The notes under the pieces are model-generated. The model saw nothing but the letters and a program-made list of their open reading frames with translations, ran no database searches and was not told the origin of the DNA. 64,000 nt of DNA from Paraphysomonas bandaiensis (taxonomy: Eukaryota; Protista; Chrysophyceae): contig CBFFRP010000298.1 of assembly GCA_965644295.1 (NCBI GenBank), forward strand, positions 124,001 through 188,000, in the 5' to 3' direction. Shown here one piece after another: positions 3,295-57,755 of this stretch. Made by a program: the position numbers and the translations under genes. How positions within the stretch are numbered: position 1 is the first letter of the stretch; the number at the start of each line of letters is the position of its first letter.

Positions 3295-3724
3295 CTATTA
3301 CAGGGTATATTGTCTATATCTGTGGGGTGCCCCAATTGCATGGCAGTCCAGACTGCAGCCAACAGTGGCTACATCGACTATGGAAGCTGAATACATGGCT
3401 GCATATGCTGCAATTCAGGAGATTGTATGGATACGAGGGGTGATGACAGAGCTCGGAATTCGTGGATTTGAGCTCAGTAAGGATGTGTCTCCAACAATCC
3501 TGAATATGGATAGCAAGAGTGTGATAGATCTAGCTCAGAATCCGGTAAACTATAAACGTTCTAAGTACATTAGAAACAAATATCATTGGATTCGAGAGCA
3601 AGTGGGAGACTGTATCATAAGGCTGTATCATGTGCCAACGGCAGAGATGACAGCAGATGTGATGACTAAAGCCTTGTCAGAGAAGCTGCACTACAAGCAT
3701 GTGCACACTATGATATCGCACTAA
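3295..3724 (+). pseudogene. Ty1/Copia retrotransposon RNase H 3' end
   Basis: PIAWQSRLQPTVATSTMEAEYMA...MDSKS..LAQNPV..KRSKYI..KYHWIRE..ADVMTKAL is the canonical Copia RNase H; upstream part is truncated. Confidence 0.9.
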
Positions 3725-3782
3725 GTAGACTTGCTTATTATAGTATATTCTGATATGTTCATATGTTCATTAAGAGTGGGAG

Positions 3783-4377
3783 TATTGAACTACAACCAAC
3801 TCCTACGTGCGTACTTGAAGTTTGGTAAAACCTATCGCTAGTAGCAATCGTGTATTCTATGCAGCAATGAAATAAATACAGAATATACATGACAAGTATG
3901 GGTGATTTAGGAGGCTGTTATGGCTGAAGAATAAGATGAAGTGATGTAGGTTATAGTATGAGATGAGATGCAGATGGTAGATAAGATTAGATTAGAAGAT
4001 ACGAGTATTAAGGCCAGATATAGGGTTGGAGTGTACCGTGACTATCCATATATACGGGTGTAACGGGCGCTTATGATGGTAACCCGTACAGTATTATGAT
4101 GGTATACGTAGGTATTCTGTAGGATGATATAGGAGTAGATAACAGGATGTTAAGGGATTTCTATATGATTAATTCTGGAAGTAGAAAACTAGCTATTTAT
4201 GGCTGGGAAACCGCTTCTAGAATTAACTATGGGGATATAGGTAGAAGGATATGGAGTTTTAGATATAATAGTGAAAGTTGATATTGTAGTTGAGTAAAAA
4301 GTTAAGAAGTAGCGAAGTAAAGAGTAAGAAGAGGAAGCTAAGTGAAGAGTGTTGTGAGAAGCCTATCCTACCCCACA
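3783..4377 (+). mobile_element. Copia 3' LTR (right end approximate), preceded by polypurine tract
   Basis: PPT aagagtgggag at 3772-3782 is followed by TATTG (degenerate TGTTG). About 3889-4233 recurs at about 10683-11023. Confidence 0.6.
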
Positions 4378-4763
4378 TCACCTGTGCACATGGACAGGGA
4401 CGATAAGACCAGCAATGTTAGTCATGATAGCGAGGCTCAATCACCCGTAGTCGTTACACTTGGTGGACAACGTGGGCTGGGTACAGTGGTTGAGAGTGAT
4501 CAACTCAGCCATGTGTCGCCCAGCGCACTATCGGCACGATCTCAGAGAGAGCCTTTGCCAGAAGAGGGAGACATTGAGAGTATCAGCCTAGACCATGAGG
4601 GAGAGGAGAGCCAGGAGACTATAAGGAGGAACTGCGGTCCCATGCACGTTACATTGACTTTTAGGACCCTATGTTAGTTTAGGACCCTATATCAGGACCC
4701 TATATATCGCTTCAGGATCTTTATATTGTCAGGGTACATATTATGCAACACCATTTGGATATT

Positions 4764-4860
4764 GGTTAGGGTTAGGGTTAGGGTTAGGGTTAGGGTTACG
4801 GTTGGGTTGGGTTAGGGTTGGGTTGGATTAGGGTTGGGGTTAGGGTTAGGGTTAGGGTTA
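4764..4860 (+). repeat. Interstitial telomere-like (TTAGGG/TTGGG)n tract, copy 1
   Basis: Run of ggttag units with TTGGG variants. Confidence 0.9.
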
Positions 4861-5419
4861 CCACAGTGTACCTACACATACTGAAACAACGTTCAGGTAT
4901 GATGTCCAATTATATCTGCTGATGATGATGTACGACTATGATCTGCTGCTGGTGACTTTGTCCGATGTGAAATCTGCTGTAAATTTATATCAAAGTCGAA
5001 TAGAAATGAGACAGAGTAGATTGAGGATGTTCTTTTCAGTTTAGTACTTGAAGTGACTGTATAGGATACGCATGGTCCCATGGTGGCTATAGTATCACGT
5101 TATTGAGTCACATGGATGGTTACATTGACTTTTAGGACCCTATGTTAGTTTAGGACCCTATATCAGGACCCTATATATCGCTTCAGGATCTTTATATTGT
5201 CAGGGTACATATTAGTAGTGAATGTCTGATTATTTAGCAATAGGCGTTGAGACCTTGCATCAATTAGTGGCTAGAAGAATGCTAGTCATACTAGTTAGAC
5301 CACTACCCGTAACTAATCAATACAAACTCTTTTATCCTACTATTTAACGCTACGAAAGCTGCTTGTGCGTCGTCGCAAGCACCAAGAGGGTACATATTAT
5401 GCAACACCATTTGGATATT

Positions 5420-5550
5420 GGTTAGGGTTAGGGTTAGGGTTGGGGTTAGGGTTAGGGTTACGGTTGGGTTGGGTTAGGGTTGGGTTGGGTTAGGGTTGGG
5501 TTGGATTAGGGTTGGGGTTGGGGTTAGGGTTAGGGTTAGGGTTAGGGTTA
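5420..5550 (+). repeat. Interstitial telomere-like (TTAGGG/TTGGG)n tract, copy 2
   Basis: Same flanks as copy 1; part of duplication 4731-5075 / 5387-5765. Confidence 0.9.
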
Positions 5551-7512
5551 CCACAGTGTACCTACACATACTGAAACAACGTTCAGGTATGATGTCCAAT
5601 TATATCTGCTGATGATGATGTACGACTATGATCTGCTGCTGGTGACTTTGTCCGATGTGAAATCTGCTGTAAATTTATATCAAAGTCGAATAGAAATGAG
5701 ACAGAGTAGATTGAGGATGTTCTTTTCAGTTTAGTACTTGAAGTGACTGTATAGGATACGCATGGGACACATTGTTATGTATGGTGTTATGTTATGCAGT
5801 GTTTTGTGTACGGCTGTAGAATAGAAGCATAATAAAGGCCACGGGGGTATTCCGTCCGTTTATTGATCTGTAGCATCCGTAACTTTACGACCGAGTACCG
5901 TATTTTTCTCTGCGGTCGGTACGAGAAAGTGCGAGTGACATGTGTTGCTATTTTTTCCCAACGGTTGTATTTTTCAGTTTAGGCTACTAATTATAGTGAG
6001 ACAAAAAGACAAAACGACAGAAGTTATAGGAGGACAAATTTATGTCTTTTTGTCTTCAAGAGGACAGAAATCGAGAGTGGAAGACATTTTTACACAATAG
6101 AGCTTCATTAATAGTTTTATACACCTGATAAACAGCACCACGTGCAATGATTTATAGTCTCAAGCATTGGCAGAAGCTTGCCATTGCTTTGGCAGGCATG
6201 GAGACCCATGGTGTCAAAAGACCACGACGATAACAGAGCTTGGAGAAATTTGTCTGAGAAACTTCTTACGACACGCCGCACTCCTGCCAATAATGATAGC
6301 ACAGACATCTACATCAGTGAAACCGTATCCCTGATGGAGTATATTTCGGCAGGAACCATTACTTATGATCAGATTGTGAAAGGTGAAGAGTGAGTGTTGA
6401 TTTAAACCTACATACATACATACATTAATGAACTCTTTGGAATTCACTCTGAAACTATTTGGAAGGAATAACTCGACATTTTTTAGGAAGAAATAAGGAT
6501 GTCAGTCATTAATGGGTTTACTCCAGATATACCCTTTTGAATAAGGTATATATATCTTATAATGTTATTCAATAGTAACATTTGTTGATACAGGACGAAA
6601 CTATACCGTCAGGCGTGCAGATGAGAGAGCTGCTCGTCAAGACGGTGAAGCTCTCCTGGAATCGTAAAGAAGCTGAAAGGATGAAGAAGTGAGCTGGCAC
6701 AACTCTCGAAGGCGAGAACAATGGCACTGACAGCAACGCCAACCAATTATCTTGGTCCGATTAATTTTCTGTTATCCATGCAAGTTCTATTTGGTTTATA
6801 CATATGTTGTTACTATAGTATACACTTTAGTTATAATGAAGCATTTGTCAGTGTCAGTTTTAAATTCACAACTTTGTTTATTACAATTGACTAATAATCA
6901 TCACATGATCTAATTGTAGGATGCATTTAATCTTGCATTTAATCACAGATATATTGAATGGGATCTAACTACACAAACAACTGAAATGCAGTGTGTGTTG
7001 TAGATATCACATATTGGCAACATATTGTAATAAACTAAATATGCTCATGCAACTTCAATATTTATCAATTATGATATTGACAGTCATATGTATGTGATTT
7101 CATTATATTACACAATTATAGAGAAACCACAATGATGAGTCAACTATCAAAAGGAGATCATCAAACACTCCAAGTCATCGTCCATCTTTCGTCTGATGTG
7201 GAAGATCATAATGATGTCAGTGCATGCGATCTATCTTCATAACCTGGACTTCGAAACAATTTTAGAGAGGACAGAATTATAAGATAAAAAGGATAAAAGG
7301 ATATAGTAATAAGCACGGTTAAGTGTTGGTGAAATTAAGCACTGTCAATCTACCTATCGTCTGTTGCACGCATGGATAAAGATGACATGTTCATTGAAAC
7401 CCACAGGGATGATACTCAATCACCCGATGTTGCCACAGTAGTACCCCAATTAAATACTTCAACTGATTTCCTCTTGAGCGTATATATCCACCATAATACC
7501 CGTCTGTAAATG

Positions 7513-13251: not shown

Positions 13252-14682
13252 TCAGTTAGATATATCCAAGTGTCCACGCTCTGCAGCTTCCCTGCGACTC
13301 TCTTCATCCCATGGACACGGAGGGTCCTGTGAACGAAGCCATTTCAGAACATCCAAGTGCCCACGCACTGCAGCTGCCGTGCAACAATCTTCATTCCATG
13401 GACATGGAGGGTCCTGTGAACGAAGCCATTTCAGAACATCCAAATGCCCACGCACTGCAGCTACCCTGCAACTCTCTTCACCCCATGGACATGGAGGATC
13501 CTGGGAACGAAGCCATTTCACCACATCCAAGTGCCCTCCCATTGCAGCATTGCGACAAGCCCATGGATCCCATGGACATGGAGGGTCCTGGGAACGAAGC
13601 CATTTCACCACATCCAAGTGTCCTCCCATTGCAGCATTGCGACAAGCCCATGGATCCCATGGACATGGAGGGTCCTGTGAACGAAGCCACTTCACAACAT
13701 CCAAGTGCCCACGCTCTGCAGCACAAGCGCAAGTCGTAGCATCCCACGGACATGGAGGGTTCTGGGAACGAAGCCACTTCATAATATCCAAGTGTCCACG
13801 CTCTGCAGCATATGCGCAAGTCCTGGTATCCCACGGACATGGAGGGTCCTGTGAACGAAGCCACTTTAGAACATCCAAGTCTCCACACCTTACAGCGTTA
13901 AAACAAACACGTTCATTCCACGGACATGGGGGTTCCTGGGAACGAAGCCACTTCATAATATCCATGTGTCCACGCTCTGCAGCATATGCGCAAGTCCTGG
14001 TATCCCATGGACATGGGGGTTCCTGTGAACGAAGCCACTTTAGAACATCCAAGTCTCCACACCTTACAGCGTTAAAACAAACACGTTCATTCCACGGACA
14101 TGGAGGGTTCTGGGAACGAAGCCACTTCACAACATCCAAGTGTCCACGCTCTGCAGCATACGCGCAAGTCCTGGTATCCCATGGACATGGGGGTTCCTGG
14201 GAACGAAGCCAGATGAGAACATTCAAGTGTCCACGCTCTGCAGCAGAAGCACAAGTCATGGTATCCCATGGACATGGAGGGTCCTGTGAACGAAGCCAGA
14301 TGAGAACATTCAAGTGTCCACCTCTCGCTGCAGCATTGCAAGTCCGTATATCACATCTGTATGTGGGGTCCCGTGTATGTGTATGTGTGTATATGTGTAT
14401 CATCTGCTGTAGTCTGCCGTATAGTGCACATGTATTCATGAGGTGGGTGTGTGGGCAGCCCATAGCCAGAGCCCATGAGACCATTGAGTTGGTCATACAG
14501 TAGTGAGATGGAAGTGACTCAAGTCTCTCTCTGCTCTTATCTCTGCTCTCATCTCTGCTCTCAGCCATATCGTGAAGTCTCTTACAAGTCATGGCGACAG
14601 GAAGCAGAGCCGTGTGTGGGATCATAGAGACGATGAGACGAAGAACATCATCGTTAAGATCAGACAGAGTGATTTCATTCAT
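13252..14682 (-). CDS. F-box-like plus 12 tandem 29-aa ankyrin-like repeats (CxxAAxxGHLDVLKWLRSQDPPCPW), intronless
   Basis: 476-aa ORF. N-terminus LSDLNDDVLRLIVSMI..VAMTCKRLH is F-box-like; 87-nt repeat units. Confidence 0.85.
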   Translation of the reverse strand: MNEITLSDLNDDVLRLIVSMIPHTALLPVAMTCKRLHDMAESRDESRDKSRERLESLPSHYCMTNSMVSWALAMGCPHTHLMNTCALYGRLQQMIHIYTHTHTRDPTYRCDIRTCNAAARGGHLNVLIWLRSQDPPCPWDTMTCASAAERGHLNVLIWLRSQEPPCPWDTRTCAYAAERGHLDVVKWLRSQNPPCPWNERVCFNAVRCGDLDVLKWLRSQEPPCPWDTRTCAYAAERGHMDIMKWLRSQEPPCPWNERVCFNAVRCGDLDVLKWLRSQDPPCPWDTRTCAYAAERGHLDIMKWLRSQNPPCPWDATTCACAAERGHLDVVKWLRSQDPPCPWDPWACRNAAMGGHLDVVKWLRSQDPPCPWDPWACRNAAMGGHLDVVKWLRSQDPPCPWGEESCRVAAVRGHLDVLKWLRSQDPPCPWNEDCCTAAAVRGHLDVLKWLRSQDPPCPWDEESRREAAERGHLDISN

Positions 14683-14935: not shown

Positions 14936-15127
14936 CACGGAGAAGAAAGTGTTTCAGAGTTGGCCTATCGTTCTTTACGGGGAGCAAAGTTACCATATCA
15001 TAAAATCCAGAAACTAATTCGGAAAGTCGTAATATCAGTTCTAAAATCCTTAAAACACGGTATTTATTGCTGTGAGTTGTGAAATCTAGGACTAAAACCC
15101 ATAAAAATTTGTGTGTGTAGTGGTGGG

Positions 15128-15457
15128 TATGTATGTATGTATGTATGTATGTATGTATGTATGTATGTATGTATGTATGTATGTATGTATGTATGTATGT
15201 ATGTATGTAGGTATGTATGTATGTATGTAAGTATGTATGTATGTATGTATGTATGTATGTATGTATGTATGTATGTATGTATGTATGTATGTATGTATGT
15301 ACGTATGTATGTATGTATGTATGTATGTATGTATGTATGTATGTATGTATGTATGTATGTATGTATGTATGTATGTATGTATGTATGTATGTATGTATGT
15401 ATGTATGTATGTATGTATGTATGCATGTATGTATGTATATATGTATGTATGTATGTA
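15128..15457. repeat. (TATG)n microsatellite
   Basis: Direct reading. Confidence 0.98.
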
Positions 15458-15628
15458 GGTATGATTGTGTCTCTGGTTTGTATAGTAAACGCAATTATTC
15501 CTCCTGAACCAATCGAGTATCCTGTGAACAAAGTTATACCACGACTGTGCTCTTCTAACTTTTTGAATGATTCGTATGCACTGCCTATATGTATATTTCC
15601 ATGCATATAACTGTGATTGAACGTAACA

Positions 15629-17825: not shown

Positions 17826-18152
17826 TATTCGAATCTTTCTATCCATATATGGATACATGATGAAGTATACACTCAGGTGAACAGATTGATACATACATGT
17901 ATATATGTAGCTAATATCTATAGGAATCTACTGTATGACTAGAATACATCGTATTCGATATGGTATACAGTGATTGGTGATGGGTGATGGGATATGATAG
18001 AGCGGATATGGGCCACGCCATATATGCTATATTAGGATATATAGAGTGCATTATATAGCGGGAAAACCATACGTGCTCTGTACTTTGTATGAAAAGTCTC
18101 ATACCATACCACTGCACATATACCTACGTACCTACCTACATACATACCTACA

Positions 18153-18428
18153 TGTATGTATGTATGTATGTATGTATGTATGTATGTATGTATGTATGTA
18201 TGTATGTATGTATGTATGTATGTATGTATGTATGTATGTATGTATGTATGTATGTATGTATGTATGTATGTATGTATGTATGTATGTATGTATGTATGTA
18301 TGTATGTATGTATGTATGTTTGTATGTATGTATGTATGTATGTATGTATGTATGTATGTATGTATGTATGTATGTATGTATGTATGTATGTATGTATGTA
18401 TGTATGTATGTATATGTATGTATGTATG

Positions 18429-18462
<34 letters not shown>

Positions 18463-18881
18463 TGTATGTATGTATGTATGTATGTATGTATGTATGTATG
18501 TATGTATGTATGTATGTATGTATGTATGTATGTATGTATGTATGTATGTATGTATGTATGTATGTATGTATGTATGTATGTATGTATGTATGTATGTATG
18601 TATGTATGTATGTATGTATGCATGTGTATGTATGTATGTATGTATGTATGTATGTATGTATGTATGTATGTATGTATGTATGTATGTATGTATGTATGTA
18701 TGTATGTATGTATGTATGTATGTATGTATGTATGTATGTATGTATGTATGTATGTGTATGTATGTATGTATGTATGTATGTATGTATGTATGTATGTATG
18801 TATGTATGTATGTATGTATGTATGTATGTATGTATGTATGTATGTATGTATGTATGTATGTATGTATGTATGTATGTATGT
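18153..18881. repeat. (TATG)n microsatellite, ~730 bp
   Basis: Direct reading. Confidence 0.98.
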
Positions 18882-33771: not shown

Positions 33772-36226
33772 AGGAATGTTTACGTGGTGCTGGACTAATT
33801 ACAGTAATGACATTAGTGCATACCCACTAACTGTATGTACGTGTCAGGTATCGAAAACGAAGTCTGCCGGACTAATTATCGATAATTACGTGTTGCTGGA
33901 ATAATTACAGTAATTTTTTCACGATGGATGTTGTGTCCCCCTTGTACTTTCTGTAATTAATACACACTAACCTGTGGCCAAACTATTCGATTAGGGTTAG
34001 GGTAGTGAATATCTTATTATTAGCAGTTCCACTCACTGACATTATCGATGCCATTTTTTCCTGTTTATTTTAGTTAGGAGGGTTAGAAGTAGAAAACTCA
34101 TATCATAAAGCCATTAAATATCTAGTTATATTTAACCACGGAGAACAAGGAGGCTATATCGTCCCGCGCTGAGCATTTTGCAACGAGGTATATATTATAG
34201 GATTATCAGGCAAGGGAATTTTACTTGCGCTCTGGAGTATATTCTGGATACGAGTGTATGTATGGGTCTATGAGCTCTACTGGGACACCCTTCGTGCTAA
34301 CGAGAACAAAAGCATCGTGTTTTCATCGTCTTGTCCAAAAAACCATACCGCAGAAGCCAATCAGAAATGGAGCTTGCCAATAAAAAAGAGTCACTCCAAC
34401 ACACACTGTGAGGACACGAATCTTTGTCGTGATGATAACTCTGACTTGATTGCAGTGAAATTGTGATTGTATAGTAATAACGAATGCTATGCGGCTGACT
34501 AAAGTGTGACGTCGAACAGAACATTGAAGTATTGGCAGGCACTGGTATATGACAGCGTTTTGGAACTCCAAGAAGCAGATTAGGGATGGTTTGAGGGAAC
34601 AAGTTATCGTCACCCAGCTGAAATCTTGATGTCGTGCTCAGAATAAAAGAAACCGCAACTTCAATTTTGCGTAATTAGTTAGTAATTTGGAATTCCAATA
34701 AGCAATTTGAGAGAGCGAATACACTGTGAATTGTGCTATTATTAACTGTGAGTTCGTATAGCAAGCTTCAATACTAACTGTCTATGCGGGAGAGCTATTG
34801 TAAAGGTTTATGCCTCGTTATCGACAAAATGATCGTGACAAGTGGGTTCCCACGACCTGTAGAAATGCGGAGAGTGTATGTCTCGAGGTTATTGAAGATG
34901 ACGCAAGCACTATGCCTATTAGTATTGGAGGGGAGTAGAGCATTTGAAATGTGCAGTGAAAGTTCAGTCCGAGTACGTCGTTGACTTATGTGCTGATTTA
35001 CGCATGAAACCGTGTTTGAAATGGAAAACGAAGACCATGCAGGTGAGGTAGTGGACTTACTGAGCAATGCTCTCAGTCGTGAAGCAGATGTAGCTATATG
35101 AGAATATGATATTACAAAACACAAGTAATAATAGCAGGGCCAACTTGTAACGCAATAAATACTGCTAATAACAACTATACTTGCGACTTTTTCTTTATCT
35201 TTAACCTCTCAGATACAAATTACAGTAAAATAATAACTCAATACTTATATATGAAACCTGGTGAAATTGGTTTACCAGGTTTTGGTATTACCTCGACTTG
35301 TAGTGGATATGCTCGACTTACTGAGCAATGCTCTCAGTCGTGGTAAAAAGAGAAATGCATCAGAAATTGCTTTCAGCTCCAGAGACTCCCGGCTAGTGTC
35401 AGGTAATAAGTAGTAGTACTAGAGACTAGAGTAGTAGAGTGTGTAGCTGGTGTACTATTGGACTGTTGAGTAATAATCAGTTCATTCATTGCATATGTAC
35501 AGTTATTGCTTTTTTGTTACATGCGCAAGCAATAATGAGAACTAGATGGTACTGTAAAGAACTATAAGATTAGGTGAAATTTATATATGCTCAAGATTTG
35601 TCGTTAATTTGCAGCAAACCCATGCATGTGTATGTATGATATGTATGTTATATATATGATATGTTATATATTATGATATGTTATATTTCTATGATCAGTT
35701 GTTGCACTTGTATTTTGTGTTATGCAATTGTATCGAGTGAGTTTGAATGTTTATTGTGAATTGAAAGTTTAAATCAACTGAGAGTAGATTTTCGTGTTGA
35801 GAGAGTGATTTGAATATTGATTGTTCTTCATCAGAAGATATATATGTTCGATTACATTATTTCTCTATATTATCTCTACTGTATCCTATATATGTATATC
35901 AATTAACTCTCTATCTCTATACTTACTCAATCTATTCCTAATTCTTTATCATATGTAACTATCTATCTACGTATCTACGTATCTAATCCATATCTAGTAC
36001 TATATATTTCTTTCCTTGTTAGGAAAAGAAAAGGTAATATCATGCAGCTCACTGGGTTCACTACGTGTATCTTAGTATCAATGTTCTCTATGACATTGTA
36101 TATATTGATCTTCATATGTATACTAGCGAAATCACGGCTCGCAGTACACCATGGTACTGGTATACCACACAAACATAAGAACAATGTATTCTTAATGTTT
36201 TTGACTGCTCTAAGCAATAATCTAAT

Positions 36227-40993: not shown

Positions 40994-41258
40994 CAATCTA
41001 AACAATTGCTATGTACTACTCAATTTCGCAATATATAAGGCCTTATGGGACTTATAGTAATATTACTATGCACAAACCAGACTTGCGGGTTTGCTCCCAA
41101 CAAAATGTATAATAAGGTGTGAGTAAACACTTATTATTACTGTTAAATCACCCAACACGGTCAACGATATCCGCTAGATAACGCCGCGCAGTATTCCCTC
41201 TAAGAATAAAGATCGCTGTTAAGACAGTGTCAAGTAACTTAAAACAATGACATGCAAG
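40994..41258. repeat. 265-bp direct repeat, copy 1
   Basis: Identical by eye to 43261-43525. Confidence 0.9.
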
Positions 41259-43260
41259 ATGGCTAACCGGGTTTTTACGCAAGTTGGACAGTTGGATATA
41301 TATTCTGCTACCACCTGATATGGTATTCCATGCCCTGGAAAACGTTTATTGAGACGAATCCAAGTAGCTTTCCCTCCAAGATGACCCACGCGAGAGTTGT
41401 GTACCTCACGCAAGCATTCCTCACGAGATATATTCATGGAAGGTTGTTCTTGGTCACTGAGATCCGACGGGTCCATAAAATTTCCTAGGAATGAGAAATA
41501 CTCAGAATCCTGACAGTCCTCTCCCAGAAAATAGGCATCATCCCACATAGAATCATCCAAGAACATGCCCGACAGATAAGCCAGTTGGTGTTCCCTGGAT
41601 AACCAGTCTGCTAACCAATTCTGTGCTCCCGAAATATGTCGGATTTTAAAATTGAATGATTGCAAGAATATTCTCCATCTAACAATTTTTGGTACCTCAG
41701 ACGCTTCCATCCAGAGCAAATTGTTATGGTCTGTTTCTATTGTAAACTGCTTTCCAACTAAGTAATACGCTAGCTGTTTAACCGAATAGTAGATACCATA
41801 GCCCTCCTGCTCTATAGTAGCCCATTTCATTGCTTGCTCTGAAAACTTTTTAGAGATAAAGGCAATAGGTTGCAATTGAGCTTCTCCTGACGGTAATATC
41901 TTCCGTTGTAGTAGTACAGAACCTATACCTAGCTCACTTGCATCAGTCCGTAAAATCCACTCTAACTCATAATCAGGGTAGAAGAGCTCACAAGCATCTT
42001 GTAAACCTTTTATGAAACGTTTGTACTCAGCTTCATAATCATGACGCCAAGTAGATTTATTCCAATTGAAAGATTTCTTAGTGAGGTCCGTTAAATGACC
42101 TACTAAGTCAGAATACTTTGGCGTGAAGCTGGAAAAGAAAACTCCCTTGCCTAGCAGAGATCTAGCTTGTTTAGTCGATGTTGGCATAGGTATGTTTGCC
42201 AACGCTTCCTTTTTATCCGGACACACTTCATACGATTTGTGTTTGCACACATATCCGAAAAAATTAACTTTCTTAAAACCAAGCCAGCTCTTAGCCATTT
42301 TCAACTTGATGTTTCTCTCCAGACATCTGTCAATAACTCGTTCCAACTTTTCATAAGCATCCTGGGGATCGTTGGCTAGTATTAGCATATTATCAAAGAT
42401 AACGATAGCCCAGTCTGAAAAATCGGCAAATATCTCCCGAACAACCTCTTGCAGAACACCAGTAGCAGGCGCTATACCCTCTGGCATGAAATTAGGTGCA
42501 AACTGTCCCCATGGCGTTTGAATGGACAATTTTTCGGAAGTTTCCTCATCTAAAGGTATTTGATGAAACGCATTTGTAAGATCTATATCCAAATAATATG
42601 GAAAATTAATGATCTTGTCAAGTTCATGTTTGACATTGGGAATAGTGTAGTTTCCCACATGCATATGATCATTGATCTTAACGTAATCCCCACAAAATCG
42701 AATATAAGGAGGTGTAGCCTTGGGCGCTACTACAAGACAAGAAGCCCATGGCGATCTACTCTTCCGGTAAAAATACCCACACAGACGACGAAATTCTTTC
42801 TCTGAAGCTTCCCATAGCTTCGGATTAATAGGCCTCGCCTTGGGTTTGATCCGATCCGGAAGTGTATCTTTCCACTTAATTTTTAAAGGTTCAACACCCT
42901 TTACACCAGACCACTCATCTGGTACAAAGACTTTAACCGCTTTAGTTCGTAGGAGATGCATCACATTTGTTTGTTCCTTCATCTCACTACTAACATGGGT
43001 CTCCAACAACTGCTCATAGTCTTTTAAAGCTTCCGCTCTAGTCTTTCCTAAGAATACCAAAGCTTCTTTAAATTGAACCGGCAATTCGGAATCCTCTTCC
43101 TCCGGTGCAATTTTAGTACTCGCTTTAGACCATGGTTCCACTATTTGTCCATGCTCTAAGCCAGACAAATCATGAGTCGAAATCTTCTTGGAATCACTTT
43201 CTATCTCATAAGATGTTTGTTCAAAAGCATGCCTCATCGATTCACACATAAAGGGATACA
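41259..43260 (-). pseudogene. pol: Gypsy family B pol fragment (RT, RNase H, integrase HHCC), open throughout but truncated at both ends
   Basis: 680-aa ORF homologous to but distinct from family A; RTDASELG, ETDH, H..H..CPTC. Confidence 0.9.
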
Positions 43261-43525
43261 CAATCTAAACAATTGCTATGTACTACTCAATTTCGCAATA
43301 TATAAGGCCTTATGGGACTTATAGTAATATTACTATGCACAAACCAGACTTGCGGGTTTGCTCCCAACAAAATGTATAATAAGGTGTGAGTAAACACTTA
43401 TTATTACTGTTAAATCACCCAACACGGTCAACGATATCCGCTAGATAACGCCGCGCAGTATTCCCTCTAAGAATAAAGATCGCTGTTAAGACAGTGTCAA
43501 GTAACTTAAAACAATGACATGCAAG
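43261..43525. repeat. 265-bp direct repeat, copy 2
   Basis: Identical by eye to 40994-41258. Confidence 0.9.
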
Positions 43526-44323
43526 GAATAACATATAGAATGGTACGCATCTACAGAATGAACCAAGTTCATTTTATATCACACACACCACACCGCATGC
43601 ATTCTTGCATACACCGTGTATACCACACGTATTATGACAATAAAACAAAACTGAATAACAGCGTATGAAACTGAATAACTGCGCATAAAACTGAAACTAC
43701 CTACATAGCATAAAACTGAAATAAAACCATAGTGATAAAACTGAAAAACAGCTAACTAAAATGAGTAACGTAATACCGTATTCGCTGATAGTCTACTGCT
43801 CTTATCATACTCCCTAAACTCATATAAAACTTATTGCATCTTTACTCTCTCTATATATTCCTCTTTAAGCCACACGCTTGCCATAATAGCCACCCACTAT
43901 GCCTGCTTAGCAGCATCACCATGCATAGCGTCTATAGCATGCTCTTGAATGGTCCTAACTCCTGCTCATCTCCATATCCAGAGCACCATTAAGTCGGAGG
44001 AAGGCGATGACCAGGTCAAATGGTCAAAACCAGGCCAAATAAGCTATTACCTAAAAAATTGTATTTTATGTGTCTAGATTCTTTCTAACATGTTTGTAGC
44101 TTGTTTCTACTGCTCAAAACATTATATTTGTTCATTATTTACAAAATAAAATTAGCGATACAAGCATTATAATTACCAAAATATATAACTATTAACTATA
44201 ATATATATTATACATATAACAATATTCAACAGTTAAATCATAATATATATATAGTTAATAAAGCGTTTGAGAATTACTCAAACATACGAGCAGTACAACT
44301 AATCCAGGATACAAACAACATGA

Positions 44324-45905
44324 TTACATAGGCTGATACTGTGGGGGATACTGGAGGGGATAGTTAGGTGGTTGCATGGGAGGCGTTACCACGTGTTGCT
44401 GTGGCTGCATACTCAAGATGAAAGCCTCATACGTTTGAACCTGCAGCTCAGCTTCATTCCAGCGTGAAGTACGTTTACCTTGATTAAGAAGAGCTTGCGC
44501 TTGCATGTATTGCAAAGGAGAGGAAAGGGTAGAAGAGCAGGGCCCAAGTGTCATTTGTTGTGCCGTTGGCTGCATGTGAGGGGTGTATGTGGGTGTCACA
44601 GGTGGATACCCGCCAGTGAATTGTTGAGAAGGAGTCCCAACAACTTGAGGAGTTGGTACAGGAGTGCTAGGCGTACTTGATGATGCGCTACGCTGCAGCA
44701 GCTGGTCCTCAAGCAACTCATACTTTCTCTTTTGCTCCTCAAGCATCCGAACAAGATCTTTTTTCAAGGGAATTTTTGACTTCTTGCTTGTTGGTAAGTC
44801 ATTATCAGTCCCACCGTCTTCTACCACACTTTCGTTCTTAACCTTCTTTTGGTCGTTCTTAACAGCACCCTGCTTTGATGCTCTCGTAGCAGCTGCACGC
44901 TTCGCTTTTGCCTTGCCCCTACACTTCTTATCATTGTGGACTGCTATTAGTGTGGACACCAGTGGTTCATGCTTAGTGTTTCTTTTCGGATTACGCCTCT
45001 TGCGGACCTTTTCGTTAGTCGCTGCAAGTTGCCCTTCGACAATTGGGTCAAAGCCATCAACAATTAGGTGGCCCTGCTCATCCTTGTTTGGTCCATTCTT
45101 CGAATCCCAGAATAAAGGTGTCAAGAACTTCACTAGATGAACTCCCATTTGGTCAGAATCAACTTCTTCATCAAGCAAATAGTCCAATTCGAGTACATGC
45201 TTACTGATTCCAGTCCACAAAATAACAACTTCGCTGTCGACGTCCCAAAGCACGACGTCGTAGCGAGGCCTGGCGCTCTTTGTCCGAAGGTAGCATAAGA
45301 TAACGTACTCCTTTCCAGTTTTATAGTTCCGAGTGCGGACCATAGACAGGTGAATAATCTTGGTGCTCGTATTGAAATGAGCACCAAGGACATAATAGTT
45401 GAAGAGCGGCGGGATAGACGCCATGACTTCGGGGTTTACGAAGAGTCGAAGTGTAGCTCCATCCATCTGAAACTTCTTCCGAGCGTAGCAGTGACTCCTC
45501 CCTGAGTACTCAATCGAAAAGGAAGCTTCAGTGGTCATAAAATCGTCAAGGAATTGATGGCCCCTGGTATTGCTCCTACCTTTCTTTGCGTCTGTTTTCT
45601 TGTTTGTTTGCAATGCATATGATGAATCACAAGCTGTGAATAAAAATAAGATCATTTGTTTGATTTCACTCACTGCACGACTCACCATCTTCTGCTGTTT
45701 CTGTTTTATCATCATCAAATTCATCAAGGAATGCTGCAGCTGCATCCATAGCACACTGGGAGCACATCGAGGAGCTTACCCCTCTATCTGATGACCTAAA
45801 CGTTTTGTTGCAAGAAGTGCAACAGACAGGACCCGCCGGCATTTCCTGAGAGCCACCACTGGAGTACATATCTAGAGTGTTGGAATATGAATCCAAGTCA
45901 TCCAT
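44324..45905 (-). CDS. Transposon accessory protein, ~509 aa, two exons: N-terminal CxxC...CxxC, central globular domain, basic region, coiled coil, P/Q-rich tail
   Basis: Exon 45905-45686 joined to 45633-44324 via a 52-bp GTGAGT...CAG intron keeps frame (EDA-CDS). Confidence 0.75.
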
Positions 45906-46377
45906 TACTTTAACATGTATGCTGTATATATGTGTCTATATATGTGTATATGTTTATATGTTTGTAGTGTATGTGTGTGATATCACTGAGAGGAGTGGAT
46001 TTGATGACAAAACAGCAACTCAACTCAAAAAAATGATGGAAGAAATTCCGAATTCCGAATACGATCCTCTTTTTTTAGTTCAACACTTCGACTTCACTTC
46101 ACTTCGACCTCATTCATCATCATCACATGCATACATGTATACATACATATATATTCCACTCATCCATAATATATACATACATACATAGCCTGAGACTCTA
46201 GTAATATCACAATCATTTAGATCAAACTCTCTGCAGTGCATCTCTCGGTTCGTTGCGCTATTTTCATCGTTTCAATCTGCTTGCTGTGTGAGCTGTGGAG
46301 TTGTTCGCAACAGGTATAGAGAATTTCAGTGCCCTCCACTCTCTGCTTATCGTGATATTATTGTCACCAACAGAACA

Positions 46378-46879
46378 CAGCACTAGCTGACTAGTTTGAC
46401 GGTTGTATGCTGCTCCGCGTCAACAGGTTACAGCACTAGCTGACTAGTTTGACGGTTGTATGCTGCTCCGCGTCAACAGGTTACAGCACTAGCTGACTAG
46501 TTTGACGGTTGTATGCTGCTCCGCGTCAACAGGTTACAGCACCAGCTGACTAGTTTGACGGTTGTATGCTGCTCCGCGTCAACAGGTTACAGCACTAGCT
46601 GACTAGTTTGACGGTTGTATGCTGCTCCGCGTCAACAGGTTACAGCACTAGCTGACTAGTTTGACGGTTGTATGCTGCTCCGCGTCAACAGGTTACAGCA
46701 TCAGCTGACTAGTTTGACGGTTGTATGCTGCTCCGCGTCAACAGGTTACAGCACCAGCTGACTAGTTTGACGGTTGTATGCTGCTCCGCGTCAACAGGTT
46801 ACAGCACCAGCTGACTAGTTTGACGGTTGTATGCTGCTCCGCGTCAACAGGTTACAGCACCAGCTGACTAGTTTGACGG
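46378..46879. repeat. Tandem array of 9 complete plus 1 partial 53-bp units
   Basis: Unit cagcactagctgactagtttgacggttgtatgctgctccgcgtcaacaggtta; only positions 6-7 vary. Confidence 0.97.
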
Positions 46880-46982
46880 GAGTGTGTATTATTATTCGTG
46901 TATTGTGTATATATAATATATTATATTGATTAAAATATTATATAATCACAATAATAACATCTTCATTTTGTTGTTGCGGTAG

Positions 46983-49655
46983 ATGAAATGTCTTTTGAAA
47001 ACAGCCCACCAGGCATGCTGTTGCCTCATATGTGTCCTATGTTGCGCTTGTGAGGGTTGTACTATTTACCGTGCGTTGAACGATACATACCTGGACGAAA
47101 CGCAGGACCTTATGATCGATTGTATGAAAGAGGTGGCAAGGAAGAATGCAGAGCAGCGGAAGCAGTATTTTCTTGATAAGTGCCGATCGTTTGAGTGCCG
47201 CGTAACTGTGTGCGGGAAGTACAAGCTAAATTTTATTGCTGGTACTGGGACACTTGCCACACGTGTCTGTCGGCAAGGTTTTCTGAGTGCCTACTGTATC
47301 TCGAAGTGGTATCTTGATAATATTGTGTCAATGATGAAGGCGGGTTATACTTGTGTAACTGCTTCCTTCAACGATCGTTCCGCGATACCTGCGGAGTTTC
47401 GTTCGAGCAAAGACTTGTTGAAGTTTGCTGATTCGTATGACATCAAGCTGTCCATGGAGATGCTGGGAAACGTAAATATGCCTAATAGTGTGTCTTCTCT
47501 TATTGCTGTAGCATGGATGCAGTACTTTTTCAGTTTGGTTGGCGATTGCCCTCCTTGTGGTACCGAGGAAGTTCACCTTGACCAATCGACAAAGCATAGC
47601 ATCTACGATGAATACGTTAATGATATGAGTGCTTTTGATAATAGCAGAGATCCGCTTTCTGAGCGCTCTTTTTTAGAGCTGTGGCGAAATGTGTACAAGC
47701 ACGTCAAACGTCGTAAGTTCAAGCACTGCTGTGGGAAGTGCAATGTATGTTCCGCTTTATCCGAGTTAAGGAGGAAGTATCAGGACAGCAGAGGGCGTAG
47801 GGAGGTTACCATGCTGTTTAACATGCACCGTATTACTTTCATGGGTGAGCGCCGTATGTACTATACACGACGAGGTCTGGGACTAATGGAATCATGGGCT
47901 TATATTTCCGGTATTACTGATGGAATGCAACAGAATAGATGCTTGCTACCATGGTTTGGTCACAAAAAAGCTCCACCTAAGCATTTGAAGCAGCACCTTC
48001 AAGGACTTTTGTTGCATGGTCGTAGCCTTGACATTTATCGCTCGTTTTCCAATGTTAGAGTTACAGCCTCGTTTTGTATATATACGTGGCTTCTGAGTCT
48101 TGAGAAATTGTTCGTTGCGAATGGGCGCAAGTCTGTGGGAACAATTTTTCATCAGATTGATGGTGGATCAGAAAATGCCAATGTGTTGTATTTGGTGGTG
48201 TGCTTCATGTTAGTGTTATATGGAATTTGTGAAAAAGTTGTCTTGACTCGGTTATTGCCGGGCCATACCCACGAGGATATAGATGGACTCTTTGCCCTCA
48301 TATGGAACTATCTGAAGGACAGGCACTGTCTCAGTCCAGATGAGTTTGAAGATGTCATCAAATCCGCGTTGCAGAAGTACGAGGACAAACTTGAAGTGAA
48401 GAATATACTTGTCGTCCCGGACTTTTCGGATTGGTTCGACGGGTTAGTTGACCCAAAGGTTGAACGTTTTGCAAAAGAGGAATGGACTCAACTGCAGTTC
48501 ATTTTTGAAAGAGTCGAGCCCTCGGAGAGGTATGAGCATGGCGTGAAAGCTACTTGTCGGCCGTATGCAAAAGATGAAGTGGTTGAGATTGTGGATGACC
48601 CTGACCAGGATTCGATCACCGGGCTGATCCCTCAGCTTACCAAGGTCAACATTCAACCTGCAGATGAAGACCCTCCCTTCAATTTTTTATTGCGGTTACC
48701 ACGAGAGGCTAAAGTATTTAAGCCGGAGCCTTTTGTTGCGATGAGTAGACAACATGCATTAGTTTGCTCAAATAAGATGATTCAATCCTACACTGGTAAG
48801 AATCCTGCTGTGGTGGAGAGTTGGACGCGGTGGAGAGACAGTGTGTTGCCACAGTCTGATGATGCAGATGAATACGTAGCCGAGCATCCCATGTACATTC
48901 CCTTTAAAGACCAACTCTTCTCTGGTAATCCAGCTCCAGAGAGGAGTTCATTGGAAAGAGCAGATCATGCTACAACCCTTGATGGCGTGACTCTTCCGCC
49001 AATGAGAGTTGTCGAGAGTACAACAAGCAGTCTGTGTCACTCTGGGAAGCCCAAACCTTCTTCCAAAAAACACGAGACACCTGCTCGTCTTGTAGTCCGT
49101 GAGAGGGATGGTTCTGTGCCATCTCAACCAAAGGAGGCCCGGGCAGGAATTATTGTTACCCAGAAGACTCCAAGAAAAACGCAGACGAAGAAGGGGTATT
49201 CATCTGGCAAGAAGAAGGAGTCAGCGACAAAGAAGAAGGGCTCTTCTTTCAACTCTGACATGATTACTAGTGACGATATTGATGGTTTTGTTGCGGAAGT
49301 CGAAGACGAGGAAGAAGAGTCAGAATATGAGGAAGAAGAAGAGGAGGGAGTTCGAAACTTTGAACTTGGTGCTGTGATTCAGAACATGCATCGCCTGCGC
49401 GGGACTATCACAGCTTGTCATGACGATGGATCCTATGATGTGAAGTACAAAGACGGTAGAACTGATGAGAATGTGTCTTGGAAGTTGCTGTTCCCTCCTC
49501 CGGCTCCTCGAAAGAGTACTTCTAGCAAGAAAGGTTCGTATGAAATGATGGTTGTTCCGGATGACTACAAGTGGGTGGATACTGGGGCTGTTTCTTCCGC
49601 CATTCACTCTGTATCCGGCAAGCGCAAGCGATCGAATGTAAATTATAAAATGTGA
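46983..49655 (+). CDS. DDD-type transposase (Sola-like by motif recall) with C-terminal Tudor-like domain
   Basis: 890-aa ORF with CGKCNVC...H zinc motif and candidate catalytic ITDGMQQ, QIDGGSEN and LLPGHTHEDID. Tail RGTITACHDDGSYDVKYKDG..DENV; NLS-like KRKR. Confidence 0.8.
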   Translation: MKCLLKTAHQACCCLICVLCCACEGCTIYRALNDTYLDETQDLMIDCMKEVARKNAEQRKQYFLDKCRSFECRVTVCGKYKLNFIAGTGTLATRVCRQGFLSAYCISKWYLDNIVSMMKAGYTCVTASFNDRSAIPAEFRSSKDLLKFADSYDIKLSMEMLGNVNMPNSVSSLIAVAWMQYFFSLVGDCPPCGTEEVHLDQSTKHSIYDEYVNDMSAFDNSRDPLSERSFLELWRNVYKHVKRRKFKHCCGKCNVCSALSELRRKYQDSRGRREVTMLFNMHRITFMGERRMYYTRRGLGLMESWAYISGITDGMQQNRCLLPWFGHKKAPPKHLKQHLQGLLLHGRSLDIYRSFSNVRVTASFCIYTWLLSLEKLFVANGRKSVGTIFHQIDGGSENANVLYLVVCFMLVLYGICEKVVLTRLLPGHTHEDIDGLFALIWNYLKDRHCLSPDEFEDVIKSALQKYEDKLEVKNILVVPDFSDWFDGLVDPKVERFAKEEWTQLQFIFERVEPSERYEHGVKATCRPYAKDEVVEIVDDPDQDSITGLIPQLTKVNIQPADEDPPFNFLLRLPREAKVFKPEPFVAMSRQHALVCSNKMIQSYTGKNPAVVESWTRWRDSVLPQSDDADEYVAEHPMYIPFKDQLFSGNPAPERSSLERADHATTLDGVTLPPMRVVESTTSSLCHSGKPKPSSKKHETPARLVVRERDGSVPSQPKEARAGIIVTQKTPRKTQTKKGYSSGKKKESATKKKGSSFNSDMITSDDIDGFVAEVEDEEEESEYEEEEEEGVRNFELGAVIQNMHRLRGTITACHDDGSYDVKYKDGRTDENVSWKLLFPPPAPRKSTSSKKGSYEMMVVPDDYKWVDTGAVSSAIHSVSGKRKRSNVNYKM

Positions 49656-49944
49656 ATTGGCTTGGGACTTTTGTATGATTATATGATATTATTTAACGTG
49701 TTTTATATATATGAATTTTTACGTATATTATTATAGTTAATAGTTATATATTATGGTAATTATAATGCTTGTATCGCTAATTTTATTTTGTAAATAATGA
49801 ACAAATATAATGTTTTGAGCAGTAGAAACAAGCTACAAACATGTTAGAAAGAATCTAGACACATAAAATACAATTTTTTAGGTAATAGCTTATTTGGCCT
49901 GGTTTTGACCATTTGACCTGGTCATCGCCTTCCTCCGACTTATT

Positions 49945-50518: not shown

Positions 50519-53500
50519 TTAATGTTGATTGACTTGGGGAAAACGTAGCGCAAAGTCGGAATCTACCAGTACCATAGTTGTCGGATCGAAGTCGCGATGT
50601 ACAAAACATTTCACATGGTAGTTATCAAATCTGTATGTGGCTTTGGTCATGGGATTCTTGACAGAAATTAGCTTCTTGCTGGTTTTATGATACCAGTGAG
50701 TAAGCATAAATTGCATCACATATGTAACAGTGGGCGAATCTGGTAGTTGTAGAGCATCATACCAGTCATCTCCGAACACTCTGATGTCTACATACGCCTC
50801 GTCACCAGGTTGAACCGTAGTTATGGACTGCTTCCTCTTCTCACTGATATATTTGGCGGCCCCATCCGTGGTATAAATAAGATGATGTAGATAAGGTTTG
50901 CTGCTACAGAATTCCTCATAAGCGATGGAATCAAATAAATCCTGGCTGTAAGGTAGCTCTCTGATATCTCCATCTTTGAAACGAACTGTAAACAACATTG
51001 TTGAACGCCGTTCTCTGTCTCCAGTGTAATATAAAATAGTGTCAATCTCATGCTGATCATGATCTCGCATAGCCATTTTATAGGCTTGTTCCCTGTCTCC
51101 TGGATACAATTTTACATCCCGTACGTCTACTTTTGTTACAACACCGGTCACCAAATGCTTGCAGTCAATATCATTCTTATACTGCGATATAACCTGAAAC
51201 GGTCCTAGGTATCTATGAGACATTTTAGGGTAAACCTTGGCCCCTTTGTCAAATAAAACAAAATCGCCCGGCTGATACTGATTCTGTCGCTGAGGAGATA
51301 TGCCTTTACTGAAACGTTTGGCCTTCAACTTATCTTGATATTCTCTCGAACTGCGTTGCAACAGAGCTAGATTATCATTGAGTTTATGTAGTCTGGCGTG
51401 GGCTTTCTCTGGTACTTCGTCCATTCCCATATTGTTATACCTCTCACTCTCAGAACCAAATGTTAACTCAAAAGGCGAATACCCCGTTTCAGATGAGACT
51501 TCAGAATTCAATACATGTGCCACTGTAGGAATCCAGCTGGGGTCTTCAAATACATCTCGCTTCTCTTCTTTCTCACTGTAATCGAATACTAATGCTCTTA
51601 AATGCCGCACTACCTCTCCTATGATCCTCTCGCATCCGTTGGCATGCCTGTCCGCTATGCTGAATGTGTGTTTGACACCAATATATGAGCAAAGTTGGTC
51701 AAATAATTGGGATTTTAGATCAGGTCCTTGGTCCGATATGATTACGTCAGTATACCAAATTGACTCCAATACTTCCATACAGTATTAGCAAGATTTATGG
51801 CAGTGACTCCCTTCACTGGTTCGAGGTAGACATGTTTTGTAAACAGATTTACCACCACGTTAATATGAGTGTAGCCTTCTTTACCGTGGGGTGTAATTTC
51901 CACTGCATCGATACCGATGGCACTACGAGCTGAAGGTGGTTTTAAACTGCGAGGTATAGCTATCAAAGCTTCTTGCATTCCGAGTCGTGTCTTAGCACAG
52001 TTGGGACATTTATTGATCATCTCGGTGACTTCTTCAAAAGATATTCTGTGTCCCGGGCATTTCTTATTCAATTTTACCCACGTGGCATAAGCTCCTTTGT
52101 GACCTTGTCTGGCATTATGAACTGCTTGAAAACATTCCTCTTTGGATAAATACAACGGTTCCAACTCTTCTTCCTTATCATCCGGATCCATAAAATTGTT
52201 AAGATAGATGTCTAAGTTGCCAAACATAGTTTCATCAATGTATTCCTCAATGTCCACATCAGGAAATATACCAGCCAAATGTTGCAACTTATGTGCTCTG
52301 GAGAGCCAATCTGCTAACCAATTTTGAGAACCTGGAATGTGTCGAATCATAAAGTTAAACGATTGTAGGTATATACGCCATCTCACAATTTTCGGTACTT
52401 CAGATGCCTCCATCCACACTAAATTGTTATGATCAGTCTCAATAATAAACTCCTTGCCCACTAAATAATATGCGAGGTTTCTGACAGCATAATAGATACC
52501 GTAGCCTTCCTGCTCTATTGTAGCCCATCGTTGTGCTTGCGTTGAGAATTTTTTCGATATAAATGCTATTGGTTGTAACTGAACAGTACCATCATCTAAA
52601 ATTTTCTTCTGTAATAATACTGCTCCTACTCCTAGCTCGCTAGCATCAGTTCTTAGGATCCATTCTAACGAATAGTCGGGATAAAATAACTCACAGGCAT
52701 CTTGTAGACCCTTTATGAATCTTCGATACTCCTCTTCATAATCATGCTTCCATGTAGATTTATCCCAGTTGAAAGTTTTCTTGGTCATGTCCGGAAGATG
52801 ACCTACCAAGTCAGAATATCTAGGTGTGAACCCTGAGAAGAAAACTCCTTTTCCTAGTAAGCTTCTGGCCGTCTTAGTACTTGTAGGCATTGGAATATTA
52901 GCCAAAGCTTCCTTTTTGTCTGGGCTAACCTCATAAGATTTGTGTCTGCATACGTAGCCAAAGAAATTTACTTCCCGAAATCCAAGCCAACTCTTAGGCA
53001 TCTTGAGTTTTACATTACGTTCAATACATCTGTCAATTATCATTTCAAACTTCTTGTATGCATCAGCGGGGTCTTTGGCTAAGATCAACATGTTGTCAAA
53101 TATGACTATGGCCCAATCACTGAAATCAGAAAACAAATCTCTTACAACCTCTTGAAGAATTCCAGTGGCTGGCGCAATACCTTCAGGCATAAACTTTGGG
53201 GCAAATTGACCCCATGGTGTTTGAATAGATAACCTCTCCGATGTTTCTTCATGCAATGCTACTTGATGGAACGCATTTGTTAAATCAATATCCATGTATA
53301 ACGGGAAATTTGTAATCTTTTGAATTTCATGTCTCACATTTGGGATTGTGTGGTTACCCACTTCCATATGCTTGTTTATCTGGACGTAGTCCCCACAGAA
53401 TCTTATGTATGGAGGCGTGGCTTTTGGCGCTACCACCAAACATGATGCCCAGGGCGATCTACTTTTACCATAGAAATAACCACATAGCCTATGAAATTCT

Positions 53501-54519
53501 TTCTCCGACGCTTCCCAGAGTTTCGGATTGATAGGTCTCGCCTTCGGCTTCATACGTTCCGGTAAACTCTCTTTCCATTTTAAACGTAACGGCTCTATTC
53601 CTTTTATACCGCTCCATTCCTCTGGAACAAAAACTTTCTCTGCTTTTCCTTTTAATAAGGCTACTATGTCCGTGTTGCACCTAAGTTCCTCACTAACATG
53701 TTTGTCTATCAAGTCATGGTAATCCTGAACTGCTTCTTGTCTAGGCTTCCCTAAGAAAGTCAATGCATCCCCAAAGTTTACGGGCAGTTCCACTTCAGCT
53801 TCCTCTGGCGCTTCCTCATCATTGGATTTTAGCCACGGCTTGATTAAATTGTCTCTTGTAAACGTATTTGATCTCCTCTGTTTCAGATCTTCTGTGTCTT
53901 TCATCTCTTCTATTTGGTTTAATTGCGAGTCTAGGACATCCTGCTCCTTTAGCTCCTGGTTAGCCTGTCTAAGCAGCTCGTCCATAAAAGGATATAATTT
54001 ACCAGTGAGTGCCGGCAAACCCAATATTATGTCCTGACTCTTCATGTCTAAGACGAAAAACTCTCCAGTGTATGTGTGAGTCCTCGCTCTCTTGTCTTCA
54101 ACTTTCAAATTTAACTTCACTGCCTCCTTCAAAGGTTTCACTGTTCGACTGTCCGCCAATATGACTCTGCACTTGGTCTTCATAATATCTTTGTCATCTA
54201 ATCTACTTCGTATCCTTTTGATTAAATCAGCACTAACATAATTTGCTGACAAGGCTCCCGTATCACATAATATATATACTAATTCTTCAATGTCCATTTT
54301 TCTGTTTAGCACTACTCTTCCTACCGTGTGACTACTGGATAGAATTTTCTTATCTGGATAACTGGCGTATAAAACTGAAGACCTATTGTCTTCTTGCTTC
54401 AGTCTACGTAAATCAAAATCCTGCGAAAGCGTTCTCCTCTTGTCATCTTCACTCTCGCAAGATTCTTCATGCTCGACTTTATGCCTACTATGTACATATT
54501 CAGTGTCTCTACTTCCTAG
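50519..54519 (-). CDS. pol: Gypsy family A pol (PR-RT-RH-IN-chromodomain-like) with a 1-nt frameshift at ~51753
   Basis: DTGA; IFDN; TDAS; HHCC; integrase GIDAV, SDQG, NGCER; GPF motif; HEIDTILYYTGD...FTVRFKDG. ORFs 51742-54312 and 50519-51778 join as SQFG-xTDVIISDQG. Confidence 0.9.
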
Positions 54520-56819: not shown

Positions 56820-57235
56820 ATGCTGAATGTTGTCATGGTTTATTATGCTGTTGTAGGCGCAATGACGTTTATACTTACCGGTGCAAGAGGGATGCCTAAG
56901 CGACACAAGCGCCCGGCTGCCCCTGTACCATCTTGCAGTGAATATGTGTCATGTTGTGTAAGGGTATGCAGTATGGCTGTATGTGATAAGAATTCTGAAC
57001 GGTGTGGAATAATAAAATGCTGAAGGCTGTGATGGTTTATTATGCTGTTGTAGGCGCAATGACGTTTATACTTACCGGTGCAAGAGGGATGCCTAAGCGA
57101 CACAAGCGCCCGGCTGCCCCTGTTCCATCTTGCAGTGAATATGTGTCATGTTGTGTAAGGGTATGCAGTATGGCTGTATGTGATAAGAATTCTGAACGGT
57201 GTGGAATAATAAAATGCTGAACGCTGTGATGGTTG
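56820..57235. repeat. 197-bp tandem duplication
   Basis: tattatgctgttgtaggc at 56841 and 57038. Confidence 0.9.
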
Positions 57236-57755
57236 ATTATACTGTTGTATGCTCTGTAAATAATGATACGATGTATTCCAATTACTAATGAATCATTAAT
57301 TATAAGGGTACAGTATAAAAAGTTGATGGAGTGGTTATAAATGAATACATATAGGCATTCTACAGATTACTAACATCAGACTGTGTCGAATAATAAAATG
57401 CTGAACGCTGTAATGGTTGATTATACTGTTGTATGCTCTGTAAATAATGATACGATGTATTCCAATTACTAATGAATCATTAATTATAAGGGTACATTAT
57501 AAAAAGTTGATGGAGTGGTTATAAATGAATACATATATTGGCATTCTACAGATTACTAACATCAGACTGTGTCGAATAATAAAATGCTGAACGCTGTAAT
57601 GGTTGATTATACTGTTGTATGCTCTGTAAATAATGATACGATGTATTCCAATTACTAATGAATCATTAATTATAAGGGTACATTATAAAAAGTTGATGGA
57701 GTGGTTATAAATGAATACATATATTGGCATTCTACAGATTACTAACATCAGACTG
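57204..57755. repeat. Three tandem ~185-bp units
   Basis: gaataataaaatgctgaacgctg at 57204, 57388 and 57574. Confidence 0.9.

Follow-up and report, generated by a model that had tools for sequence, protein, structure and literature searches.

An inherited minisatellite just upstream of the transposase gene in a two-gene DNA transposon of Paraphysomonas bandaiensis

The transposon and its central array

We analysed a 64,000-nt stretch of the Paraphysomonas bandaiensis genome (contig CBFFRP010000298.1, positions 124,001 to 188,000, forward strand; hereafter the window). An intact 5951-bp transposon of the cut-and-paste type, bounded by terminal inverted repeats (TIRs) and carrying two divergently transcribed genes, occupies positions 43991-49941 and encloses a tandem array. 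The initial annotation had placed this array between two transposon genes, and the map of the element bears it out. The features are as follows, with a slash marking each boundary.

43988-43990, no strand: left target-site duplication ATT (...ACCATT/AAGTCGG)
43991-44203, plus: left TIR, starting AAGTCGGAGG; the arms are 100% complementary, over 214 nt with one flanking base
44324-45754, minus: ORF2 helper gene, 476 codons, transcribed away from the array
46262-46376, plus: conserved block left of the array, holding the donor-like CAG/GTATAG (46311-46319)
46377-46879, plus: array, 9.5 units of 53 bp
46880-46982, plus: conserved AT-rich block that borders the array on its right; TATA-like words at 46908 and 46939
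46944: ATCACAAT, within the AT-rich block
46980-46982: T-rich tract plus TAG at the end of the AT-rich block, directly before the ATG
46983-49655, plus: transposase gene, 890 codons, Pfam DUF7869, motifs DGMQQ / QIDGGSENAN / GHTHEDID
49729-49941, minus: right TIR, ending ...CCTCCGACTT
49942-49944, no strand: right target-site duplication ATT (CCGACTT/ATTATG)

The TIRs are perfect inverted repeats of 213 bp. The left terminus recurs in the copies C204, C254, C336, C432, and C661; a clean ATT/ATT target-site duplication is found in the window copy only, and C432 shows TAA/CAA. The transposase matches DUF7869 in Pfam (E = 1e-18), its N-terminal region is Cys-rich, and residues D313 and D393 together with the block 427-434 (GHTHEDID) are conserved among 27 sequences. 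A direct Pfam match of the window transposase to ISAzo13 was not found; the ISAzo13 DDE family is present in part of one related ESM Atlas cluster, and the searched literature yielded no mention of DUF7869. A 3-bp target duplication is stated for Zator and ISAzo13 in the available text of PMC10045372. The window element resembles this Zator/ISAzo13-like group in its 3-bp target-site duplication and DUF7869 DDE/D transposase and differs in its helper gene and central array, which are missing from the description in that same text (PMC10045372).

ORF2 belongs to no Pfam family and to no recognisable DNA-binding family, and the ESM Atlas and a word search returned only a self-like match. Its paralogues and those of the transposase lie side by side and divergently oriented on at least seven other contigs of the genome, and this recurrent pairing makes the two-gene layout a family trait. 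Match coordinates put the distance between helper and transposase in these paralogous families at about 1 to 2.9 kb. Paralogous families in the Paraphysomonas bandaiensis genome lie on contigs C345, C93, C132, C656, C351, C139, and C538. Five 847-residue versions of the transposase occur in public assemblies (ENA, Logan), on contigs of 2.8-3.0 kb; they are 99.5-100% identical, all begin at M44, and fit either DNA or RNA contigs. The copies C597, C661, and C310 carry a 25-bp deletion that takes out the T-rich tract and TAG together with the A of the first ATG.

Tandem Repeats Finder reports the array at 46377-46879 with a period of 53, 9.5 copies, 98% matches, and a score of 964, and an independent repeat search recovers the same 53-bp ladder. 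This upholds the about 9.5 near-identical units of the initial annotation. Cut at ACAGCA, the array resolves into nine full units and one partial unit, head to tail. Unique spacers are absent, as had been noted, and the polarised series of variants is exactly reproduced: the dinucleotide 3' of ACAGCA, the sole variable site in the window array, reads CT,CT,CT,CC,CT,CT,TC,CC,CC,CC. The inverted arms TTGACG and CGTCAA, described for each unit, do occur in all of them, but the paired CTAG described alongside is seen in just the five units of CT type, and those with CC or TC have a single CTAG. Tandem repetition of the 53-bp unit is far above chance; the 6-bp arms are at chance level, an inverted repeat of at least 6 bp occurring in 18.6% of shuffled units. 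Array lengths here and below are those of the given assembly.

Two further features of the unit concern single positions. A hypervariable site (window 46382-46384 and its equivalents) alternates between CAGCTG, an E-box-like palindrome, and TAGCTG, and the C597 and C661 arrays show independent C/T variation at the equivalent unit position. The three CpGs of each unit never vary.

The window is rich in other repeats and elements. The transposon is located between two retroelements: identical 265-bp direct repeats (40994-41258 and 43261-43525) bracket one 680-codon ORF (41219-43261, minus strand) encoding RT/RNase H/integrase-zinc-finger, and another pol of Gypsy type, with 74% identity, occupies 51742-54312. 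The assembly carries TTAGGG-type repeats, and interstitial telomere-type hexamer runs (GGTTAG = TTAGGG) of 17 and 23 copies are found at 4764-4860 and 5420-5550; both are followed by the same 27-bp repeat, which indicates duplication of a block of ~0.65-0.7 kb. Long tetranucleotide microsatellites lie at 15127-15463, (GTAT) x 84, and 18152-18881, (ATGT) x 184. A repeat with an 87/174/261-bp period (~12 units, 80% alike) spans 13264-14344, and one of 186/197-bp units (96-98% alike) spans 56820-57755.

Inheritance and turnover of the array

We sought copies in the whole 62.5-Mb assembly with the element sequence and a unit pattern. The pattern search restricts the unit to six element copies and a few stray near-matches across the assembly; the unit is no general satellite of the genome. 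The copies and remnants compare as follows.

Window copy (W): unit 53 bp, 9.5 copies, intact element
C597: unit 50 bp, 19.4 copies, transposase interrupted by stop codons in its 5' half
C661: unit 50 bp, 21.4 copies, 7-unit higher-order pattern
C310: unit 50 bp, 5.4 copies, units 93% alike inside the array
C432: unit 50 bp, 44.5 copies, units all identical
C297: unit 49 bp, 1.5 copies, shortest form
C413: unit 56 bp, ~1.3 copies, element truncated within the array

All related genome copies that retain the region carry the array with an identical right boundary (..GACGG/[AG]AGTGT.., followed by AT-rich sequence), which is constant even in C432. As C432 is only ~68% identical to the window element (~32% nucleotide divergence), this common boundary argues that the repeat is older than the split of the lineages. 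The initial annotation had named absence from sister copies and related elements, along with a lack of transcription and binding, as what would speak against its proposals; the array is instead retained in both kinds of copy. Arrays also persist in C597, C661, and C310, where numerous stop codons interrupt the transposase in its 5' half.

Units at the array edges are degenerate and orthologous among copies, and interior units are 93-100% alike (98-100% in the 50-bp copies). The 50-bp copies open with a degenerate unit of 49 bp, the orthologue of the one full unit in C297. Identity within arrays reaches 93-100%, against 66-92% between lineages. This is the pattern usually seen when slippage and unequal exchange enlarge a direct repeat, here one of 1.5 units, and leave its edges unhomogenised. 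We conclude that the array is a real, inherited minisatellite of the transposon, located just upstream of the transposase gene.

Two copies depart from the general layout. C432 holds no transposase remnant, and an unrelated repeat lies 3' of its array (L031:1983-4208); that repeat is 89-93% identical to window positions 34199-35635 and replaces the transposase gene. C432 is a decayed non-autonomous relative, and its 44.5 identical units reflect either a very recent expansion or an assembly artefact. C204 (G000:C204:23460-27155; L002, L004) is a ~99.9%-identical internal-deletion copy that lacks element positions 2208-4460, and with them the array and the transposase's 5' half, and shows GAC microhomology at the junction. 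Its left flank has 655 bp in common with the window copy and its right flank differs (TAG, not ATT, after CTT), which relates the two loci by duplication, or as divergent haplotypes, plus a rearrangement.

Between the window copy and C597, intergenic sequence outside the array is 94-99% identical, the 5' part of ORF2 75-80%, the 5' half of the transposase 86-96%, and its 3' half 95-100%. We considered selection as the cause of the flank conservation and rejected it: the identity profile is a recombination mosaic, since the 3' transposase is also 95-100% identical in the dead C597, and it cannot be read as constraint.

More distant relatives were found by a word search, which returned 102 relatives of the transposase, every one DUF7869. 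A scan of metagenome contigs gave 80 loci; 42 of them, 41 non-redundant, extend 150 bp or more 5' of the estimated start codon. Tandem arrays lie within 900 bp upstream in 7 of the 41 and are absent there from the other 34. Repeat density reaches 11% within the upstream 900 bp and 6% beyond it, against 3.7% on the downstream side and 0.7% in coding sequence. We looked for assembly breaks at upstream arrays and saw no signal, edge repeats occurring at 6/31 5' ends and 6/31 3' ends. To judge from these contigs, upstream arrays are recurrent in the DUF7869 transposon group, not general.

The closest parallel is L039 (34% protein identity), with about ten units of 46-59 bp. Its array (5277-5884) is built as a 161-bp higher-order repeat of three unit types (59, 56, and 46 bp) and stops ~120-140 bp before the candidate starts (the first ATG or the ATG opening MLKTC). 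The ORF upstream of this array is unrelated to ORF2, and the ORF2 homologue of L039 lies downstream of its transposase. The upstream arrays of L046 and L047 have 43-45-bp units. At L046:52-977, a 332-bp repeat joins four or five such units to ~155 bp; those ~155 bp also lie 3' of the last L046 array, which implies that part of the downstream region was duplicated together with the units. Unit sequences in the upstream arrays of distant relatives are unrelated to that of the window family. A motif common to the distant arrays was sought and rejected: ACAGCATTAG matches L046, but 20% of shuffles yield a 10-mer.

Candidate roles of the array

Anatomy, inheritance, turnover, and position of the array are direct observations; from them we infer a possible effect on transcription. 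Our leading but tentative reading is that the array serves as a repeated upstream control module, its unit number changing as slippage and unequal exchange proceed. The family as a whole would have inherited, in the non-coding stretch 5' of the transposase gene, an ancestral direct repeat of 1.5 units; replication slippage and unequal exchange would then have expanded, contracted, and homogenised it. It may act as a repeated control module of the transposase promoter, perhaps also of the divergent helper gene, with unit copy number setting promoter strength by analogy with mouse L1 monomers and LTR enhancers. We favour this because the array abuts the conserved AT-rich, TATA-like block, its 3' end lying 104 bp before the transposase ATG; conservation of both array flanks across copies also counts for it, as do the upstream arrays in 7 of the 41 distant relatives. 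Several observations count against it. Large arrays persist in dead copies and in the transposase-less copy, so array growth needs no function. The 34 arrayless relatives tell against a control module, as do the units of the different lineages, which have no common motif beyond chance. The intergenic stretch is the only repeat-tolerant place in the element, and the high flank identity of the window copy and C597 is explained equally well by the recombination mosaic.

Ranked close behind, and only somewhat less probable, is that the array has no function at all and is a neutral passenger, perpetually remade by slippage in the element's only unconstrained part. Copy number ranges from 1.5 to 44.5 with units of 49, 50, 53, or 56 bp, the biggest and 100% homogeneous array sits in the decayed, transposase-less C432, and copies with a stop-ridden transposase still carry ~20 units. 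Absence of arrays from most distant relatives fits as well, and so does the lack of a common motif, of excess fold stability, and of a TIR-matching word. A passenger accounts less readily for an array kept at one exact site over ~32% nucleotide divergence, for arrays with periods of 43-59 bp that recur at the equivalent place in unrelated lineages, or for stem pairs retained on the sense strand.

Third in rank, and unlikely on balance, is a model that puts the transcription start 5' of 46313 and the array within an intron of the 5' UTR (46314-46982), with sense-strand hairpins of its units acting in the pre-mRNA or being processed to small RNAs. The initial annotation had pointed to a donor-like CAG/GT at 46313/46314 and to a TAG at 46980-46982 before the ATG (46983), and both are there: GT at 46314-46315 and AG at 46981-46982 give the candidate intron GT..AG boundaries, the latter behind a T-rich tract. 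AG/GTR, though, occurs once in 622 bp, as chance predicts. No ATG occurs within 46138-46313 (P about 0.06), which favours a leader there. Between the array end and the start codon at 46983 there is no ATG either, which, with the TATA-like words of the AT-rich block, speaks for a transcription start after the array. The units of W and C432 do contain ATG, which places the array outside the mature leader: transcription would have to begin 3' of it, or splicing would have to remove it. Splice-like sites also surround the L039 array, with CAG/GTACGT 34 nt before it and TTTTGGAATAG, a T-rich tract plus AG, 5 nt before the first ATG; two upstream ATGs lie between the array and this first ATG. In L047, TTTTCTTTACAG stands 17 nt before the ATG. 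On the other side, the block left of the array (46262-46376), nearly invariant in C597, C661, C310, and C297, is missing from C432, which leaves that copy without the donor; conservation extends 60 nt into the candidate intron, and TATA-like words lie 3' of the array. From these sequence signals, a 5'-UTR intron containing the array is possible.

The initial annotation had envisaged units that form hairpins or structured RNAs; their predicted folds are no better than dinucleotide shuffles (z between -1.12 and +0.98 for units of three lineages, folded in two registers and on both strands). We therefore rejected the hairpin as a significant feature, given ordinary fold z-scores and an equal inverted repeat in nearly a fifth of shuffled units. 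In an alignment of 16 distinct units, the TTGACG/CGTCAA stem pairs in 97.9% of cells on the plus strand, with G-U allowed, and single changes in live arrays are all wobble-compatible on that sense strand. Two of six stem pairs show a compensatory change, both from C432 alone; 11/500 column shuffles match the stem values, a level that related sequences can reach without structure. The same stem emerges from RNAalifold, with a consensus energy of just -5.96 kcal/mol. L039 units show no covariation, and the Rfam search gave no family, its single hit being mir-297, below threshold, on a simple repeat (46128-46190). A hairpin on the sense strand only is weakly suggested by the alignment. It is improbable, in our estimate, that conserved sense-strand hairpins in a 5'-UTR intron tune transposase output and that the distant arrays are the same device with co-evolving sequence.

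Last comes a phased landing pad, in which 53 bp, about five helical turns, would align sites for ORF2 or the transposase as an internal transposition enhancer or operator. The Mu IAS, an internal transposition enhancer/operator, is one comparison. The extra THAP sites of Galileo's tandem repeats (cited in PMC4079207) are another. Proposed in the initial annotation, in-phase spacing fails on the relatives, which use 49, 50, and 56 bp; periods of 49, 50, 53, and 56 bp within one family (4.7 to 5.3 turns; 43-59 bp and more in distant relatives) mean that helical phase is not kept. Spacing of the inverted arms also shifts between 13, 14, and 16 nt. We looked for 8- to 11-mers common to the unit and the TIRs or the rest of the element and found none in excess, and accordingly rejected the unit as a copy of TIR binding sites. 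The array does lie between divergent genes, the 12-mer TAGCTGACTAGT is invariant in all three unit lineages, and the non-autonomous C432 kept its array though the transposase gene was lost; set against the drifting period and arm spacing, the lack of a common word, an ORF2 without recognisable DNA-binding family, and a ~99.9%-identical deletion copy, C204, that does without the array, these points leave a phased pad very improbable.

Relation to known repeats and significance

Mouse L1 5' monomers and repeated LTR enhancers are tandem units with measured promoter activity. The array resembles them in its head-to-tail units directly upstream of the element's own gene, in their variable number, and in fast turnover between lineages. 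It differs in its host, a DNA transposon, and in that any promoter activity here is putative.

The array is of the same kind as the tandem repeats already known from the interior of DNA transposons, Tetris and Galileo among them (PMC4079207). In Tetris TIR-220 and Galileo of Drosophila, internal tandem units vary in number, homogenise, and grow longer (PMC4079207), and the likeness extends to the tandem units inside a TIR element, here ranging from 1.5 to 44.5. The repeats of those elements, in contrast, lie inside long TIRs, and Galileo's carry transposase-binding sites, its tandem repeats holding extra THAP sites (cited in PMC4079207). The present array occupies the middle of the element, with a gene on either side, and has no word in common with the TIRs.

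Mobile-element repeats are a known source of satellites and promoter variation. The present case contributes a clean series at a single orthologous site, spanning 1.5 to 44.5 units, within a two-gene group of DUF7869 (Zator-like) transposons not mentioned in the searched literature. Were the intron-hairpin device real, splicing efficiency or small RNAs would let the element limit itself. If unit number has no effect, the array is an ordinary minisatellite; if it sets transposase expression, these copies would form a natural dosage series for DNA-transposon self-control in a protist.
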